The position numbers were made by a program, and so were the translations under genes. Positions 48-42,240 of a DNA stretch of 64,000 bases are shown here, in pieces (the first letter of the stretch is position 1; each line of letters opens with the position of its first letter). The notes below the pieces were generated by a model, which saw only the letters and a program-made list of their open reading frames with translations, was not told the origin of the DNA and did not search any database. Source of the DNA: Blastocystis sp. Blastoise (lineage: Eukaryota > Protista > Bigyra: Opalinata); contig JBBPEB010000015.1 of NCBI GenBank assembly GCA_039096225.1, forward strand, positions 992,001 to 1,056,000, written 5' to 3'.

Positions 48-1143
48 ATATATGGAATCAGTCAATATTCCGCTGATGTTGAAAAATATTATGGCAAACC
101 AATGGATATGGAGTTTTGTATATATAAAGATAAGATATACATTGTTCAAGCAAGACCTATTACTACTTTATTAGATTTACCTGAAGGTAAATATTTTTTT
201 TTTTAATTTATTTATTGCTTATTTATATAGATATGGATCCATTATCTCCTAATTATAAATATTTATATCATAATTGTCTTGGTTATCAATATGTGCAACT
301 TTTAAATAAACCTTGGAATTATTTAAGTTATTCTTGTTATAATAATATCTTTTTTAAGAATTATAATTATTTCCGTTGGATAGGAGGTTTTCCTTTTATT
401 GAAATTAATCATATAGTAGCTAATAAAACATTTGAAAATATTTTAGTTACTTTATTTGGTCGATATGAAGATAAAGAAATTGCTTATGTATATTATTTAT
501 TATTAGGTTGGTTAGGCTAATTTTTATTATAATATTTATTAGGTTTATTATTTTTATTATTATTATTGTATTTTAGTATAATATTTATTATTATTATATT
601 TATATTTATATTTATACCCTTTATATAGGCTACGGATGAATGGTATAAGAATGATTTATGTTATTTTAATAAGGGTTTATCTACATGGCCATTTATGAAG
701 CATTTCTTATCTTTTATTGGTTCACATTTAGGTTCCTATATTTGGAATTATTATTTATTCTTTTCACCTAAAAGACTATGTTATAGTTTATCAACTTATC
801 TTAATAACTGTGTTGATAAATATAATCAAATACTAGAAGATGTTCGTAGTAATGATAATACAAAAATTACTTTAAGATCTTTACAACAAGATGATTTTTG
901 TTTCTTTAAATATTTTGATGATAATTTTGTATCATTATTTTCTGCTGCTAAAGCAAAAATATTGGTATTAAATCTTTTAAAGAAATATAATATGGGTTCT
1001 GATGAATTACAATCGATGTGTGAAGGAAGAGAACAAAATTTAGCTGCTCAATTAAATTATAAAGTATCCATATTTAAATTACAAATAAAACTTTGTGATA
1101 ATATTAAACATGGATTTAGACAAAATCTAGATGTATATACTTG

Positions 1144-1182
<39 letters not shown>

Positions 1183-1588
1183 TATAAATATTTTTTTATT
1201 TGTTTATTATGTGTTATTATAGGAATTGGTAGAAGATGAAGATGAGAAAGGTATTTTTGATTTATTTAATTCCTTAGAAACTTCATCTATTGTTGAATTC
1301 AAAGAATTGTCGAATCAATGGTTAGAATTAATGGATACTTTCGGTAGAAGAGGTACAGGAGAAATTCTTATTAGTAACCCAAGGTATATATATATAGTAT
1401 ACTTATCATTGTTATATATTAATATATTGATGTTTATTATTTTAATAAGACTCTATCAATATTGTAACTATAGATTTATTGAAAAACCATCAATTTTAAT
1501 AGGAATGGCATTAAATACATCTTTTAAAAATACTGATGATAAATCACCAAGAAGTATAAGTATAAAAGCAGATGAAGCTGTAGATGAA

Positions 1589-1625
<37 letters not shown>

Positions 1626-2391
1626 TTATTATTATTATCTTTTATTATATATATTATTATTATTATCATTTATATAGATATGTTCCTCTATGTCTTCAAG
1701 AGATGCTAGTAAACTTCGTTATTATCTTCCTTTAGTAAGATTAATTATGGCTTATAGAGAACATCATAAATATATTGGTATTACTATCATATATGCTGAA
1801 AAAATTTTAATTCAGAAAATAGCAAAAAGAATGATAAAAGAACATATAATTCAAAAAGAAGATGAAATCTATAATTTTTCTCTTGAAGAATTATGCGATT
1901 ATGATGAAGGAAAACTTGATATTCATTCTATTCAAGAAAAATTATTATATAGAAAGAATGTTTATACAAAAGCTTTTTCTATGTCTTCACCTCGTCTTAT
2001 TGTATCTCCTTTTGCTGCTTGTATTAATTTATCTCAACAAACACAAGAAGAAATCAGAAAATTACCTAATAATATCTTAAAAGGAATGCCTACTTCTGCA
2101 GGTATAGTTGAAGGAAAAGCAGTAGTTGTTACTGATCCTAAGAATGCTCATTTAAAGAAAGGAGATATATTAATAGCTGAATCTGCTGATCCTGGTTGGA
2201 CTCCATTATTTGTACCTGCTTCTGGTGCTGTTATTGCTGTTGGTGGTCCTCTTACTCATGGTTCTATTGTAGCTAGAGAAATGGGTATTCCTTGTGTTGT
2301 TAATGTTACAAATGCTATGCAAAAGATACATACTGGCATGAATCTTAGAGTTGATGGTACCAAAGGTATTGTTGAAATTCTTAGCGAATAA
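48..2391 (+). CDS. Rifampicin phosphotransferase (RPH)-like / PigC-like PEP-utilising dikinase; spliced, 5' end outside the window
   Basis: Exons 48-186, 231-487, 629-1132, 1223-1383, 1474-1588 and 1678-2391 join in frame through GT-AG introns. Motifs: end of ATP-grasp domain (VEKYYGKPMDMEFCIYKDKIYIVQARPITTL); central domain (FGRRGTGEILISNPR, AYREHHKY); C-terminal phospho-His swivel domain (DPGWTPLF, GGPLTHGSIVAREMGIPCVV, LRVDGTKGIV). This domain order is RPH/PigC-type, not PEP synthase/PPDK-type. Confidence 0.85.
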
Positions 2392-12793: not shown

Positions 12794-21976
<9,183 letters not shown>

Positions 21977-22812: not shown

Positions 22813-25800
22813 TTATATAGGAGCAACATTTTGGATTTGTACAGGTGCAACTACAGGTGCAACTACAGGTGGAACAGTATGTGGTTTTAACTTTCTATTC
22901 TTTTTTGATTTCGTTGTAATTAATAAAATACAAGTAATTATTAAAGCCACAATAAGTATTATAATACTTATAATTAAGATTATAGTAATAATTGAGATAG
23001 AATTACCTGTTGATACTATTTCTCCATTAATTGAAATACCAGTAATTCTCTTAAGATTAGAATCAGTACTTGCTTTACATGATTTAAAAAGAATAGAATC
23101 ACTACCTGTAAATAAAGTATTTATATCATTCTTTATATTATCTTCATCAGATTTATTAACAGTTATTCTTACATTAACTGAAACACCATCAGTATAAGTA
23201 GATATACTAGAAACACTAATAATCTTTACACTAGAAGAAGGAATAGAATAACTAGCAAGAGATTGAACTATAAGTGTTCTAAAGGTTTCAGTAGTAGAAG
23301 GAACATTAAAATCAGTATCAGTTAATCCTTCAAGTTTAATGGAAAAATTAATAAAGACTTTATCATCAGTAGGATTTTCTTGAGAATTATACATAAAACA
23401 ATCAGAACTATCAGCAATTTGCCAAGAAGCAGTACCAACACCTGTATTTTGACAAACACGACTTTGAATACCGGATTGACCTAAAGGACATTCAAGATAA
23501 GCAGTTATACCTCTTTCAGTAATAGGCCAAATACCATCAGAAGGACATTTAACAATACTTATCGTAATAGTAATAGTAGCAGTTGATTCTCCTCTAGAGT
23601 TAGAAACAGTAATAGAATAACTATTAGTAGAAGAAGAAGTAGGTGTACCATATATCAAACCATTTTGAGTATTAAAAATGAATCCATCAGGAAGAGAAGG
23701 AGATATAGTAAGATCATTAAGACTACCACCAGTAATAGAAGCAATAATAGGAGTAATAGCATCATTTTTATATCCAATAATAGTATTTGTATTGTAAGAA
23801 ATTGAAGGCATCTTTAATTCGCAATTATTAATAATATCTCCCCAAACAGCAGGATATTCAAGTTTACATAACCTTGTTCTGAATCCTTCATAATTAATAG
23901 GGTCTTCACAAGGTAATGTGATTTGTTGACCAATATCTGTAATTGGCCAAATACTTTGAATGGGACATTTAGCAATACTAATAGTAATGGTAATAGTAGA
24001 AGTTGCTTCTCCTCTAGCATTAGAAACAGTAATAGTATAGCTTTCAGAAGAAGCAGTGGTAGGAATACCATATATAAAGCCATTTTGAGTATTCAATATT
24101 AATCCATCAGGAAGAGAAGGAGAAATAGTAAGATCATTAAGACTACCTCCAGTAATAGAAGCTACAATAGGAGTAATAGCAATATTTTTATAACCAATAA
24201 TAATAGTATTCGTATATGTTATAGAAGGTAATTTGAGTTGACAGTTATTTCTAATATCTCCCCAAATAGCAGGACTTCCTATTAAACATATTCTTGTTTT
24301 AAATCCTTCATAATTAATAGGATCTTCACAAGGTAAAATAATTTGCTCTCCAACTTCTGTTACTGGCCATATATCTTCCAAAGGGCAACTAGTTGTGTTT
24401 ATAGTAATAATAATATCTGTAGTAGTTTCTCCTTTTTCATTAGAAATAGTTATAGTATAAGAACCAGAAGAAGAAGTAGTAGGTGTACCATAGATAATAC
24501 CAGTAACAGGATTAAGTAATAAACCATTAGGAAGAGGAGGAGATATAGTAAGAGGATTCAAATTACTTCCAGTTATAATAGCAGTAATAGGTATTATAGG
24601 AACATCTTTATATCCAATAGTTGTAGATACAGTATATATTATAGTTGGCATTATTAATTGACAATTATTAACAACAGAACCCCAAACAGCAGGATAACCA
24701 ACTTGACATGATCTGGTTCTATAACCTTCATAATTAATAGTGTCTTCACAAGGTAAATCATATTTTTGGCCAATTTCAGTAAGAGGCCAATTACCTTCAG
24801 AAGAACAAAATACTAAATCAATATAAACCAAAATAGCAGTAGAAACAGAACCAAATTCATTAGTAGCAGTAATAGTATAAGTAGTAATATCAGAATTAGC
24901 AAGAGGAGTACCAGAAATCGTGCCATTAACTTGATTAATAGCAAGACCATTAGGAAGAGCTGGATCAATTGTATATGTCAATTCAGCACCAACTATAATA
25001 GGAGAAAGAGAAACAGGTATATTTTTATGGAAATTAAAAGGAGAACCAACATAGGAAAGATCAGTAGGAGCAACTAAAGTACAAAGAATTTCAACATCAC
25101 CAAATACACCAGCAGTACATAATCTTCTTTGAATACCAGCATAACCATTAGGACATTCTTGGAATGAATAACCACCTTCAACAGCAGGTCCCCAAATACC
25201 ATCAGCTACACAAGAAGAAGGAGTATTAGTAATATACAAACCAAACTCAGATAATTGAAAGCCATCACTACAAGTCTTTCCATCAAGAGAAGAATTATCA
25301 CATTCAGTAGCAATAAATCTATAAGAATTATAAGATTGAAAAGAATAGAAGTCATAAGAGAATGTTTGTTTATAAGAGGTAAAAAATTGTTGGTGTTCAT
25401 GATCTAATAAAGTCCAAGTAATACCATTATCATTAGAACCTTCTATTCTCCAACTAGAAGGAGATTTTTGATTGCAATTATTGCCATTTGTAATCTTATA
25501 ATGATTGATAAATTCTTTACGACCATTATTGAATGCATATTGATAAATAGCACCAACGCATCGTGGACCACTAACAACCTTTGTATTTAAATTATTATCA
25601 AATAACTTATCAGTACCTTCAGAATCAGTCTTTTCAATATCAGACCAAGCAACACCATCAGATACTCTGTATTCACCAGAAGCAATAAAAGAAACAACAC
25701 TTGTGAAATCATTAGTAGCAGGAAGAGTATCTTTCTTGTGAATCTCAATAGCAATAACATTAGTACCAGCAACAAGAATAGGGTTAATAAGTGTAGAAAC

Positions 25801-39200: not shown

Positions 39201-39599
39201 GTAGTAGTGTCATCATCAGCTTATTATATAAAAATACAAGGAGACATAACAGTATGGGTATGTTCTAACAAGAGGAAGATTATTTTGAAGAAATATTTGT
39301 ATTACGATGAAAATATAATCAGTTGTTAGAATAAAAAGGCTTATACTAGTAATACTATTATACTTCATGATCTTCTGATTGTTATATAGAGAAGACTATT
39401 AATATTATTGATTCTTTATTAGTATTAGTATATGTACTATTATTTATAATCTTAGTATCTTAGTATTTGCATCCAAATTACTGATTCTTAATATAGCATT
39501 CATTCTTCTTCATGCTTTATTATTATTCTTATTGTTAATACACTTGATATGACTTTTGTTTTTGTTATTAATAACTGTAATATACAGCAGTAATATATG

Positions 39600-42240
39600 G
39601 AAGTAATAATATTTAAGGATGTAGTAATAATAGTATCATAAAGAAGTAATATTATCATAAAGAAGTAATAGTATCATAAAGAAGTAATAGTATTATAAAG
39701 AAGTAATAGTATTATAAAGAAGTAATAGTATTATAAAGAAGTAATAGTATCATAAAGAAATAAAAGTATTGTAAAGAAGTAATAGTATTGTACAGAAGTA
39801 ATATTATTATAAGGAAGTAGTTACATTATAAGGAAGTAATAATATTATAAGTAAGTAGTTAAATTATAAGTAAGTAATATTATAATGAAGTAGTAATATT
39901 ATTATTATAAGTAAGTAGTAACATTATAAGTTATATTATTAAAATGAAGTAATAATATTGTAATGAAGTAATATTATAAGTAAGTAGTAATAATATTATT
40001 ATAAGTAAATGGTAACATTATAAGTTATATTATTATAATGAAGTCATAGTATTATAAGGAAGTCATATTATAATGAAGTAATAATATTATAAGGAAGTAA
40101 TAATATTATAAGGAATTAATATTATTATAAGTAAGTAGTAATAATATTATTATAAGTAAGTAATAATATTATAATGAAGTAATAGTATTATATAGATGTA
40201 ATAATATTATAAGGAAGTAATAGTATTATAAGGAAGTAATAATAATATAAGTAAGTAGTAATAATATTATTATAAGGAAGTAATAATATTATGAGGAAGT
40301 AATAGTATTGTAAAGAAGTCATAGTATTATAAGGAAGTAATAGTATTATAATGAAGTAATAATATCATAAAGAAGTAATATTATTATAAAGAAGTAATCT
40401 TATTATAAAGAAGTAATAGTATTATAAGGAAGTAATAGTATTATAAGGAAGTAATAATATTATGAGGAAGTAATAATATTATCATAAGTACTAACATTAT
40501 AAGTTATATTATTATAGGTAAGTAATAATATTATAAGTAAGTAGTAACATTATAAAGAAGTAGTAACATTATAAAGAAGTAGTAACATTATAAAGAAGTA
40601 GTAACATTATAAAGAAGTATTAATATTATAAAGAAGTAATAATATTATAAGGAAGTAATAGTATTATAAGGAAATAATAGTATTATGAGGAAGTAATAAT
40701 ATTATAAGTAAGTAGTAATAATATTATAAGTACTGACATTATAAGTTATAATATTATAAGGAAGTAATAGTATTATGAGGAAGTAATAGTATTATGAGGA
40801 AGTAATAGTATTATAAGAAAGTAATAGTATTATAAGAAAGTAATAGTATTATGAGGAAGTAATAGTATTATGAGGAAGTAATAGTATTATAAGGAAGTAA
40901 TAGTATTATGAGGAAGTAATAATATTATAATGAAGTAATAATATTATAAGTAAGTAGTAATAATATTATAAAGAAGTAATAATATTATAAGGAAATAATA
41001 ATATTATGAGGAAGTAATAGTATTATAAAGAAGTAATAGTATTATAAGGAAGTAATAGTATTATAAGGAAGTAATAATATTATAAGGAAGTAATAATATT
41101 ATAAGTAAGTAGTAATAATATTATAAGTACTAACATTATAAGTTATAATATTATAAAGAAGTAATAATATTATAAGGAAGTAATAATATTATAAGTAAGT
41201 AATAATATTATAAGTAAGTAGTAATAATATTATAAAGAAGTAATAGTATTATGAGGAAGTAATAGTATTATAAGGAAGTAATAGTATTATAAGTACTAAC
41301 ATTATAAGTTATATTATTATAAGTAAGTAATAATATTATGAGGAAGTAATAGTATTATGAGGAAGTAATAGTATTATAAGTACTAACATTATAAGTTATA
41401 TTATTATAAGTAAGTAATAATATTATAAGTAAGTAATAATATTATAAGGAAGTAATAGTATTATAAGTAAGTAATAATATTATAAGGAAGTAATAATACT
41501 ATAAGTACTAACATTATAAGTTATATTATTATAAGTAAGTAATATTATTATAGGAAAGTAATAATATTATAAGTAAGTAGTAACATTATAAGGAAGTAAT
41601 AATATTATAAAGAAGTAATAATAATATGAGGAAGTAATAATATTATGAGGAATTAATATTATCATAAGTAAGTAGTAATAATATAAGGAAGTAATAATAT
41701 TATAAGGAATTAGTATTATCATAAGTAAGTAGTAATAATATTATTATAAGTAAGTAGTAATATTATTATAGGAAAGTAATAATATTATAAGGAAGTAGTA
41801 GTAATAAGGAAGCAATTACAATATTATTATAAAGAAGTTGTAATAATATTATAGGTAAGTAATATTATTATAGGTAAGTAATAATAGTATTATAGGAAAG
41901 TAATAATATTATAAGGAAGTAGTATTAATATTATTATAGGTAAGTAATAATATTACAGGTAAGTAATAATATTACAGGTAAGTAATAATATTATAGGTAA
42001 GTAATATTATTATAGGTAAATAGTAATAATATTATAGGTAAGTAATAATATTATAGGTAAATAGTAATAATATTATAGGTAAGTAATAATATTATAGGTA
42101 AGTAATAATATTATAAGGAAGTAATAATATTATAAGGAAGTAGTAGTAATAATTTTATAGGTAAGTAATAATATTATAAGGAAGTAGTAGTAATAATAAT
42201 AGTATAAGTAATAGTATTATAAGGAAGTAATAATACTATT
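39600..42240. repeat. Complex ~19-bp minisatellite (ATAAGGAAGTAAT[A/G]ATATT variants), 2.6 kb, inside the CACTA element
   Basis: Well over 100 variant units with higher-order blocks and extreme strand skew (almost no C on the + strand). Confidence 0.95.

Follow-up and report, generated by a model that had tools for sequence, protein, structure and literature searches.

The rifampicin phosphotransferase (RPH) that Listeria monocytogenes encodes (RPH-Lm) is the closest relative of solved structure for the gene considered here, and the residues needed for its two half-reactions were established by mutagenesis (Stogios 2016; PMC4844700). The substrates of the wider superfamily include rifamycins, plant flavonoids (PMC13099321) and prodiginine precursors (PMC13534948), and Bacillus subtilis YvkC is described in PMC13099321, which cites Hsu et al. 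2023, as a flavonoid phosphate synthetase. We analysed a gene of this superfamily in Blastocystis sp. 'Blastoise', annotated by NCBI as the hypothetical protein WA158_001152 (P0156, 932 aa). The gene enters the left end of the window, by which we mean the whole 64,000-nucleotide stretch C4:992001-1056000 of the host assembly (33.3 Mb, 34 contigs, ~22% GC); the genome paper (Lind et al. 2025; PMC12129017) gives 33 contigs, 33.3 Mb and 23.1% GC for isolate Rus-B, the source of which was a Russian tortoise. A preliminary description of the window had read positions 48-2391 as an intact, spliced open reading frame (ORF) with the architecture of RPH and PigC/RedH enzymes, acquired laterally as a single gene and possibly used to inactivate rifamycins. 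Its product belongs to the RPH/PRK06241 superfamily, has three domains and is likely a cytosolic enzyme that transfers phosphate from ATP to a small molecule, which is probably not a rifamycin. The gene is one of 13 paralogues, and these likely trace to one prokaryotic entry.

Domain order, catalytic residues and gene structure

When the exons were joined by script, window positions 48-2391 corresponded exactly to exons 3-8 of an eight-exon, 916-aa gene ending in TAA. The first two exons lie outside the window, ~0.9 kb to its left. Family, structure and PDB searches were run with single exons or with the annotated P0156, and local alignments and trees were built with the joined 916-aa model. 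The encoded protein consists of a PPDK_N ATP-grasp domain, an Rph-type central domain and a C-terminal His-swivel domain. Exon by exon, Pfam placed PPDK_N on exons 2 (E 4.5e-64) and 3 (E 7.6e-11) and PEP-utilizers on exon 8 (E 2.8e-22), and it gave no match for the three middle exons. The NCBIfam models for PRK06241, RPH and PigC matched both ends of the gene only, and on exon 8 the PRK06241 and RPH models aligned through to their C-terminal ends. The precomputed Pfam list for P0156 contains PF01326, PF27448 (Rph_4th) and PF00391, and the occurrence of all three in one chain of ~850-930 residues places the protein in the PRK06241/Rph_4th superfamily, to which RPH, YvkC, PigC, RedH and numerous uncharacterised 'PEP synthases' belong. 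The best curated model was NF004878 (PRK06241-type), at 511 bits against a cut-off of 945, so by the NCBI rule the protein is not a member of that subfamily.

The top PDB sequence match of P0156 was Listeria RPH (5FBS/5HV1, E 7e-102), aligned over residues 15-348 and 638-930; the ~290 residues between them (349-637) could not be aligned to RPH-Lm by phmmer. An AlphaFold2 model of P0156, computed from a 70-sequence alignment, had a predicted local distance difference test score (pLDDT) of 90.1 and a predicted template-modelling (TM) score of 0.89. In a Foldseek search with this model, RPH-Lm (5HV1) was the only whole-length structural match (TM 0.77/0.84), and phosphoenolpyruvate (PEP) synthase (PEPS), HpeI and PPDK matched the ATP-grasp or the swivel domain alone.

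The functional residues of RPH-Lm (PMC4844700) were mapped onto the gene by way of a Bacillus RPH in an L-INS-i alignment. All residues needed for both half-reactions were conserved. At the ATP site, Lys22, Arg117, Thr136 and Glu297 of RPH-Lm correspond to Lys22, Arg119, Thr138 and the Mg-binding Glu309 of the window gene. For the second phosphotransfer, Gln337, Arg666, Glu667 and Lys670 correspond to Gln356, Arg706, Glu707 and Lys710, and the catalytic histidine, His825, corresponds to His873. The three-domain architecture proposed in the preliminary description was thus borne out by the Pfam domains and the whole-length structural match to RPH-Lm, and the catalytic His (THG) and the YREHHKY motif that it had picked out do align with THG His825 and with Arg666/Glu667/Lys670 in the YREYPKY motif of RPH-Lm. 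Compared with its bacterial homologues the protein is not extended at the N-terminus, Lys22 being aligned with Lys22, and a cytosolic location is therefore expected.

All eight exons are on the forward strand. Exon 1 (C4:991081-991098) and exon 2 (C4:991142-991984), the latter carrying PPDK_N, are the upstream exons that the preliminary description had left to be recovered. Exon 3 (48-186; acceptor TATAG at 43-47, donor GTAAAT at 187) encodes residues 288-333 plus one base, which form the end of the ATP-grasp domain with its QARPIT motif, and contains the Glu309 codon (111-113). It is followed by intron 3 (187-230; 44 nt, phase 1, GTAAAT..TATAG), the site of which (333, phase 1) is common to paralogues P0152, P0153, P0155, P0004 and P0044. 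Exon 4 (231-487, residues 334-419) covers the arm-1 subdomain of the central domain, including Gln356, and intron 4 (488-628) is 141 nt long and in phase 0. The apex and arm-2 subdomains are encoded by exon 5 (629-1132, residues 420-587), the most divergent part of the gene; searched alone, this exon gave no Pfam-A match and no NCBIfam match. After intron 5 (1133-1222; 90 nt, phase 0), exon 6 (1223-1383) encodes residues 588-640 plus two bases, and it is here, at P0156 residue 638, that the alignment to RPH-Lm picks up again. Intron 6 (1384-1473; 90 nt, phase 2), exon 7 (1474-1588, residues 641-679) and intron 7 (1589-1677; 89 nt, phase 0, 4% GC) precede exon 8 (1678-2391), which encodes residues 680-916 and the TAA stop. 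This last exon holds the end of the central domain, with the YREHHKY motif at 1753-1773 (Arg706, Glu707 and Lys710), and the His-swivel domain, with the His873 codon at 2257-2259.

The six window exons join in frame and are all bounded by GT..AG, as expected of the intact, spliced ORF that had been described. The gene has seven GTA..TAG introns of 43-141 nt, with an intron GC of 4-17% against 29% in exons. The earlier view of a eukaryotic, intron-bearing gene was correct. Contamination was considered as a source of the sequence and was excluded by the 2.5-Mb contig, the seven spliceosomal introns and the host-like base composition.

The public gene model differs from the 916-aa model only at intron 488-628, where the exon is stretched to 510 and a 26-nt micro-exon is placed at 542-567. 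Through the annotated micro-exon the protein gains 16 hydrophobic residues, for which the paralogues have no equivalent. The inserted stretch (P0156 residues 421-438) is the sole segment of the AlphaFold2 model with pLDDT <50, the paralogues splice exactly at the 487|629 junction, and a homologue on metagenome contig L088 has a 30-nt intron at the same codon boundary as intron 4. Because of these three observations the simple intron 488-628 was preferred, and the micro-exon is likely a mis-splice in the public model.

A paralogous family and its origin

The genome carries the family at thirteen loci, to which all 13 of its PF00391 (PEP-utilizers) matches belong. The window gene agrees in all seven intron positions and phases with P0152, P0155 and P0044, the copy that diverges most; P0153 lacks one of the seven family introns and P0001 has lost four. 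Because positions and phases are identical even in P0044, the introns predate the expansion of the family. Among six paralogues the two end domains were more alike (identity 0.65 for the ATP-grasp and 0.67 for the swivel domain) than the central domain (0.32-0.34); the corresponding values among Bacillales RPH were 0.72, 0.81 and 0.63-0.66. The ratio of central-domain to end-domain identity was therefore ~0.5 for the paralogues versus ~0.9 for the Bacillales RPH orthologues, so that the substrate-binding domain of the paralogues has diverged about twice as far as the catalytic end domains. This divergence may reflect diversification of the substrates, which would be various hydroxylated compounds, either metabolites or xenobiotics, that bacteria or plants contribute to the gut contents.

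Several members of the family depart from the window gene in other ways. P0044 (WA158_006502; C25:760959-765485, locus L096) keeps the catalytic His and the Lys, Arg and Glu of the ATP site, and in RPH-Lm numbering Arg666/Glu667/Lys670 are changed to Ser/Gln/Leu, Gln337 to Phe and Thr136 to Pro. It may be either a pseudoenzyme or an enzyme with an altered second half-reaction. P0154 (C19:126640-129147) and P0002 (C19:70185-72593) are inverted copies ~55 kb apart that lack most of the ATP-grasp domain, matching at residues 6-89 and then from 288 onward. P0001 is present as two near-identical inverted copies (C32:89961-93090 and C32:134846-137851) ~42 kb apart. The annotated model of P0151 (1105 aa; C1:316082-319388) has an extra N-terminal SAP domain (PF02037) and was not reproduced by exact splice mapping in its locus; it may represent two genes fused in annotation.

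Within Blastocystis, the B. hominis (ST7) protein CBK20672.2/XP_012894720.1, a 556-aa gene model, fell in the cluster of P0019. The nearest proteins beyond this genome were metagenome ORFs on contigs L006, L088, L090 and L092, which have a eukaryotic gene structure. On L006 and L088 the first exon of the homologue comprises six codons, and the GT..AG intron after it, 29-31 nt long, has the same position and phase (0); on L088, L090 and L092 the homologue genes were split by the prokaryotic gene caller. L006 and L090 carry the motif TGTTTGTT shortly past the stop codon, a motif of the kind that Lind et al. sought at Blastocystis transcript ends. A Mo25 gene adjoins the homologue on L088, and the neighbouring gene on L006 had no match in this genome.

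In trees of the full-length proteins and of the C-terminal half, the Blastocystis and metagenome genes formed one clade (99% support in the Shimodaira-Hasegawa-like approximate likelihood ratio test, SH-aLRT; branch 0.45). All sampled bacteria and archaea fell outside this clade in both trees, and the clade was separate from Bacillales RPH. The bacterial contig P0138, which has a long branch, sometimes adjoined the clade. Beyond the clade, the best matches shared 26-32% identity along the full length and belonged to Bacillota, Myxococcota, Chloroflexota, Actinomycetota and archaea. Neither word searches nor an exhaustive representative search returned a named non-Blastocystis eukaryotic protein among the close matches, and a search of bacterial genome contigs with the paralogue alignment, using generic ATP-grasp patterns, returned only whole-length matches of ~25% identity and short archaeal proteins.

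As all close relatives beyond Blastocystis are prokaryotes, lateral transfer explains the origin with the fewest assumptions, and a single old transfer from a prokaryote to Blastocystis is the most likely history that these comparisons suggest. The transfer would be old and not peculiar to this organism, because the 13-paralogue family is spread across Blastocystis. The earlier proposal of a laterally acquired gene is therefore supported as regards transfer but not as regards a single gene. The family would have entered the Blastocystis lineage once from a prokaryote, would have gained its seven spliceosomal introns and host-like base composition prior to expansion, and its substrate domains would then have diversified among the paralogues.

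Expected reaction and competing explanations

A two-step mechanism, from ATP to histidine to substrate, is expected for the window gene because of its RPH-Lm-type domains, its fold match and its conserved residues. By homology to Listeria RPH, His873 of the C-terminal swivel would attack the β-phosphate of ATP, with release of AMP and inorganic phosphate (Pi). The swivel would then dock on the central domain, where Arg706, Glu707 and Lys710 of YREHHKY, together with Gln356, would position the phospho-histidine, and the phosphate would pass to a hydroxyl of a small molecule in the central-domain cleft. Such an RPH-type relay (ATP to phospho-His, with release of AMP and Pi, to a substrate hydroxyl) is the most likely reaction judged from the sequence.

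Several points weigh against the reading of the gene as one of a transferred and diversified family of phosphotransferases. Relaxed constraint, and not new specificities, could be the cause of the strong divergence seen in the central domain, and the low-confidence alignment of this domain to RPH makes the comparison of rifampicin contacts given below approximate. The tree has no root, and the eukaryotic clade does not fall within a named bacterial group, so that the direction of transfer rests on taxonomic distribution. The metagenome contigs appear Blastocystis-like from intron size, intron positions and the poly(A)-site motif, and the neighbours of the homologue on L088 (Mo25 and enoyl-CoA hydratase) are 39-52% identical to genes that lie elsewhere in this genome and are not syntenic. 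Some of these points would also suit a family that was ancestral to eukaryotes or stramenopiles and passed on vertically with losses, and without lateral transfer. The eukaryotic clade lies on a long branch outside all sampled prokaryotic groups, and all seven introns are old. RPH-like 'PEP synthase' genes occur in arthropods too; a paper on a mite mentions one. However, everything beyond the clade among the close matches of the word and representative searches is bacterial or archaeal, and vertical descent would need loss in nearly all other eukaryotes; we regard it as improbable.

As to the substrate, the suggestion that the gene inactivates rifamycins was not upheld. A true rifamycin phosphotransferase, protecting Blastocystis or modifying rifamycins for another reason, would be in keeping with RPH-Lm as the nearest solved structure and best PDB sequence match, and with the conserved catalytic His and Arg-Glu..Lys triad; RPH-Lm also holds rifampicin mainly by unspecific hydrophobic contacts (PMC4844700), so that a divergent pocket might accept the drug. 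Yet full-length P0156 scored 423 bits with NF041857 (cut-off 999) and 285 bits with NF000283 (cut-off 1700), and the best NCBIfam model was that of another subfamily, NF004878. Of the 11 rifampicin contacts of RPH-Lm (Gln336, Tyr351, Thr354, Pro356, Ala357, Met359, Val368, Leu387, Leu478, Phe479 and Met673), only two, Tyr351 and Phe479, were identical, a count that is approximate because the alignment there is of low confidence. The RPH-specific Gln336, which is Gln in 6/6 Bacillales RPH, is Val in the window gene, as in most non-RPH members, and the position of RPH-Lm Thr523 is Ala. Identity to Bacillales RPH was 0.35-0.40 in the end domains and 0.10-0.25 in the central subdomains, and the mean identity of exon 5 was 0.26 to five paralogues versus 0.10 to Bacillales RPH. 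An approximately unbiased (AU) test rejected a clade of the Blastocystis genes with Bacillales RPH (difference in log-likelihood 97, p-AU 0.0017). The sub-cut-off NCBIfam scores, the 2/11 contacts and the AU test indicate that the window gene is not an RPH orthologue. Thirteen divergent copies also fit poorly with a single drug. Rifamycins target bacterial RNA polymerase, and a eukaryote would thus have little need of protection. A role on rifamycins accordingly has a low probability, and the substrate of the enzyme is probably not a rifamycin.

A biosynthetic enzyme of the PigC/RedH/HapC type, in which the relay would activate a hydroxyl or carbonyl for condensation in the making of a secondary metabolite, shares the same three-domain order, and the PigC and RedH NCBIfam models match the whole length (E 5.6e-96 and 1.8e-86). 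Genes for polyketide synthases and nonribosomal peptide synthetases (PKS/NRPS) have also been reported in Blastocystis ST7, as the abbreviation list of Denoeud 2011 indicates. The PigC and RedH scores, however, were 322 and 291 bits, far under their cut-offs of 1300 and 1350 and below the scores of the RPH and PRK06241 models, and no biosynthetic genes were seen beside the window copy, the neighbours of which are a MATE transporter gene and an adhesin-like ORF. There is little chance that this explanation is correct. The least probable explanation, which we consider very unlikely, is a PEP synthase or PPDK, as implied by some publications and database names. Bacterial homologues carry the name 'phosphoenolpyruvate synthase', a Blastocystis 'Phosphoenolpyruvate synthase' appears in Table S4 of Denoeud 2011, and Rio Bartulos 2018 has PEP synthase replacing pyruvate kinase and describes a PPDK activity assay in extracts; in addition, no gene outside the family carries a PEP-utilizers swivel domain in this genome. 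Against this, P0156 lacks the PEP/pyruvate-binding TIM barrel PF02896 (PEP-utilizers_C), and its swivel is formed by the last ~100 residues and does not lie mid-chain. A six-frame search did not find PF02896 anywhere in the assembly, although the same search was positive in 14/14 control genomes. The same kind of search recovered two intron-split pyruvate kinase genes (C22:566478-567641 and C20:725735-727561), and its sensitivity was therefore adequate. Pyruvate kinase is thus present in the genome, pyruvate is not phosphorylated by RPH enzymes (PMC4844700), and Abrahamian 2017 reports Blastocystis to be without PPDK. Proteins of the RPH-like family are predicted to be unable to bind pyruvate or PEP in the known way, and publications in which PEP synthase takes the place of pyruvate kinase in Blastocystis probably rely on misnamed members of this family. 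Reading the gene as a small-molecule phosphotransferase thus corrects a likely misannotation, in which family members are called 'phosphoenolpyruvate synthase' and on which at least one paper builds a glycolytic argument.

Neighbouring genes and comparison with known systems

To the left of the window, on the minus strand, lies the intronless MATE gene WA158_001151 (C4:989022-990668, L005:5022-6668; 549 aa, Pfam MatE), arranged head-to-head with the RPH-like gene and 412 bp upstream of its ATG. Six such MATE genes are present in the genome, and another of them (C32:85884-87410) lies 2.5 kb upstream of paralogue P0001, beside the first of its two inverted copies only. The closest relatives of these MATE proteins beyond Blastocystis are bacterial MATE proteins (21-31% identity), and they may represent a second lateral transfer. 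With 6 x 13 genes, chance is an improbable cause of two adjacencies, but the MATE pairs may stem from one duplicated segment, and their orientation differs between the two. We therefore treat 'modify-and-export' as a lead only. In its full form, in which a bacterial RPH-type dikinase became an expanded eukaryotic family that phosphorylates xenobiotics and, with MATE export, protects the protist by 'phosphorylate-and-export' from secondary metabolites that plants or bacteria release in the gut of a herbivore, the idea is speculative and rather unlikely. If true, it would give protists a type of detoxification system that has not been described in them. Further to the left, on the forward strand (L005:22-3507; C4:984022-987507), is an intron-free ORF of 1161 aa, which has numerous repeats containing Cys and a hydrophobic segment at its C-terminus and looks adhesin- or receptor-like.

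Three repeats were observed elsewhere in the window. A minisatellite at 39594-42239 consists of ~138 copies of the 19-bp unit TATAAGGAAGTAATAATAT and accounts for the extreme GC skew (0.82) of that interval. A (TAT)69 microsatellite lies at 15907-16113, and a 420-bp unit is repeated 2.9 times with 77% identity at 23525-24757, possibly as a repeated coding domain.

In the human gut no eukaryote is commoner than Blastocystis. Should these enzymes phosphorylate drugs or metabolites present there, they could influence the response of Blastocystis to antibiotics, polyphenols from plants or toxins from bacteria. Horizontal gene transfer (HGT) into Blastocystis is already well established, and the family itself is already public, as hypothetical or 'PEP-utilising enzyme' proteins and under the PEP synthase name in Denoeud 2011. 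A literature search found no paper linking Blastocystis with RPH-like enzymes, and the transfers that Lind et al. 2025 mention in the main text do not include the family, which the supplementary HGT tables of that paper may have. With the present results, a large enzyme family whose genes bear introns and probably derive from prokaryotes joins the transfers by which Blastocystis was shaped.

Compared with known systems, the window gene shares homologous ATP-grasp and His-swivel domains with PEPS and PPDK; it differs from them in lacking the PEP-utilizers_C barrel, in the C-terminal position of its swivel and in an unrelated central domain. With the prodiginine-condensing enzymes PigC, RedH and HapC (NF052631, NF052632; PMC13534948) it has in common the domain order and the phospho-histidine relay, and it differs in scores far under their cut-offs and in the lack of a biosynthetic gene context. 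The uncharacterised bacterial 'phosphoenolpyruvate synthase' subfamily NF004878, below the cut-off of which the gene falls, gives a single end-to-end match (P0156 residues 15-931 to positions 15-890 of the 891 in the model). YvkC, by its description in PMC13099321, is an RPH structural homologue able to phosphorylate many kinds of plant flavonoid; likened to the window gene by this description and not by sequence comparison, it sets a precedent in the superfamily for substrates that are plant metabolites and not antibiotics. The nearest system is RPH-Lm (5FBS/5FBT/5FBU, 5HV1; PMC4844700) and with it the Bacillales RPH group (NF041857), which have the same three domains in the same order, and the nine functional residues of RPH-Lm are all conserved in the window gene. 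Overall identity to RPH-Lm is 26-27%, with values of 10-25% for the central domain, Gln336 and 9/11 rifampicin contacts differ, and the two are phylogenetically separate. Unlike RPH, the window gene is eukaryotic, carries seven introns and is present with its paralogues in 13 copies.

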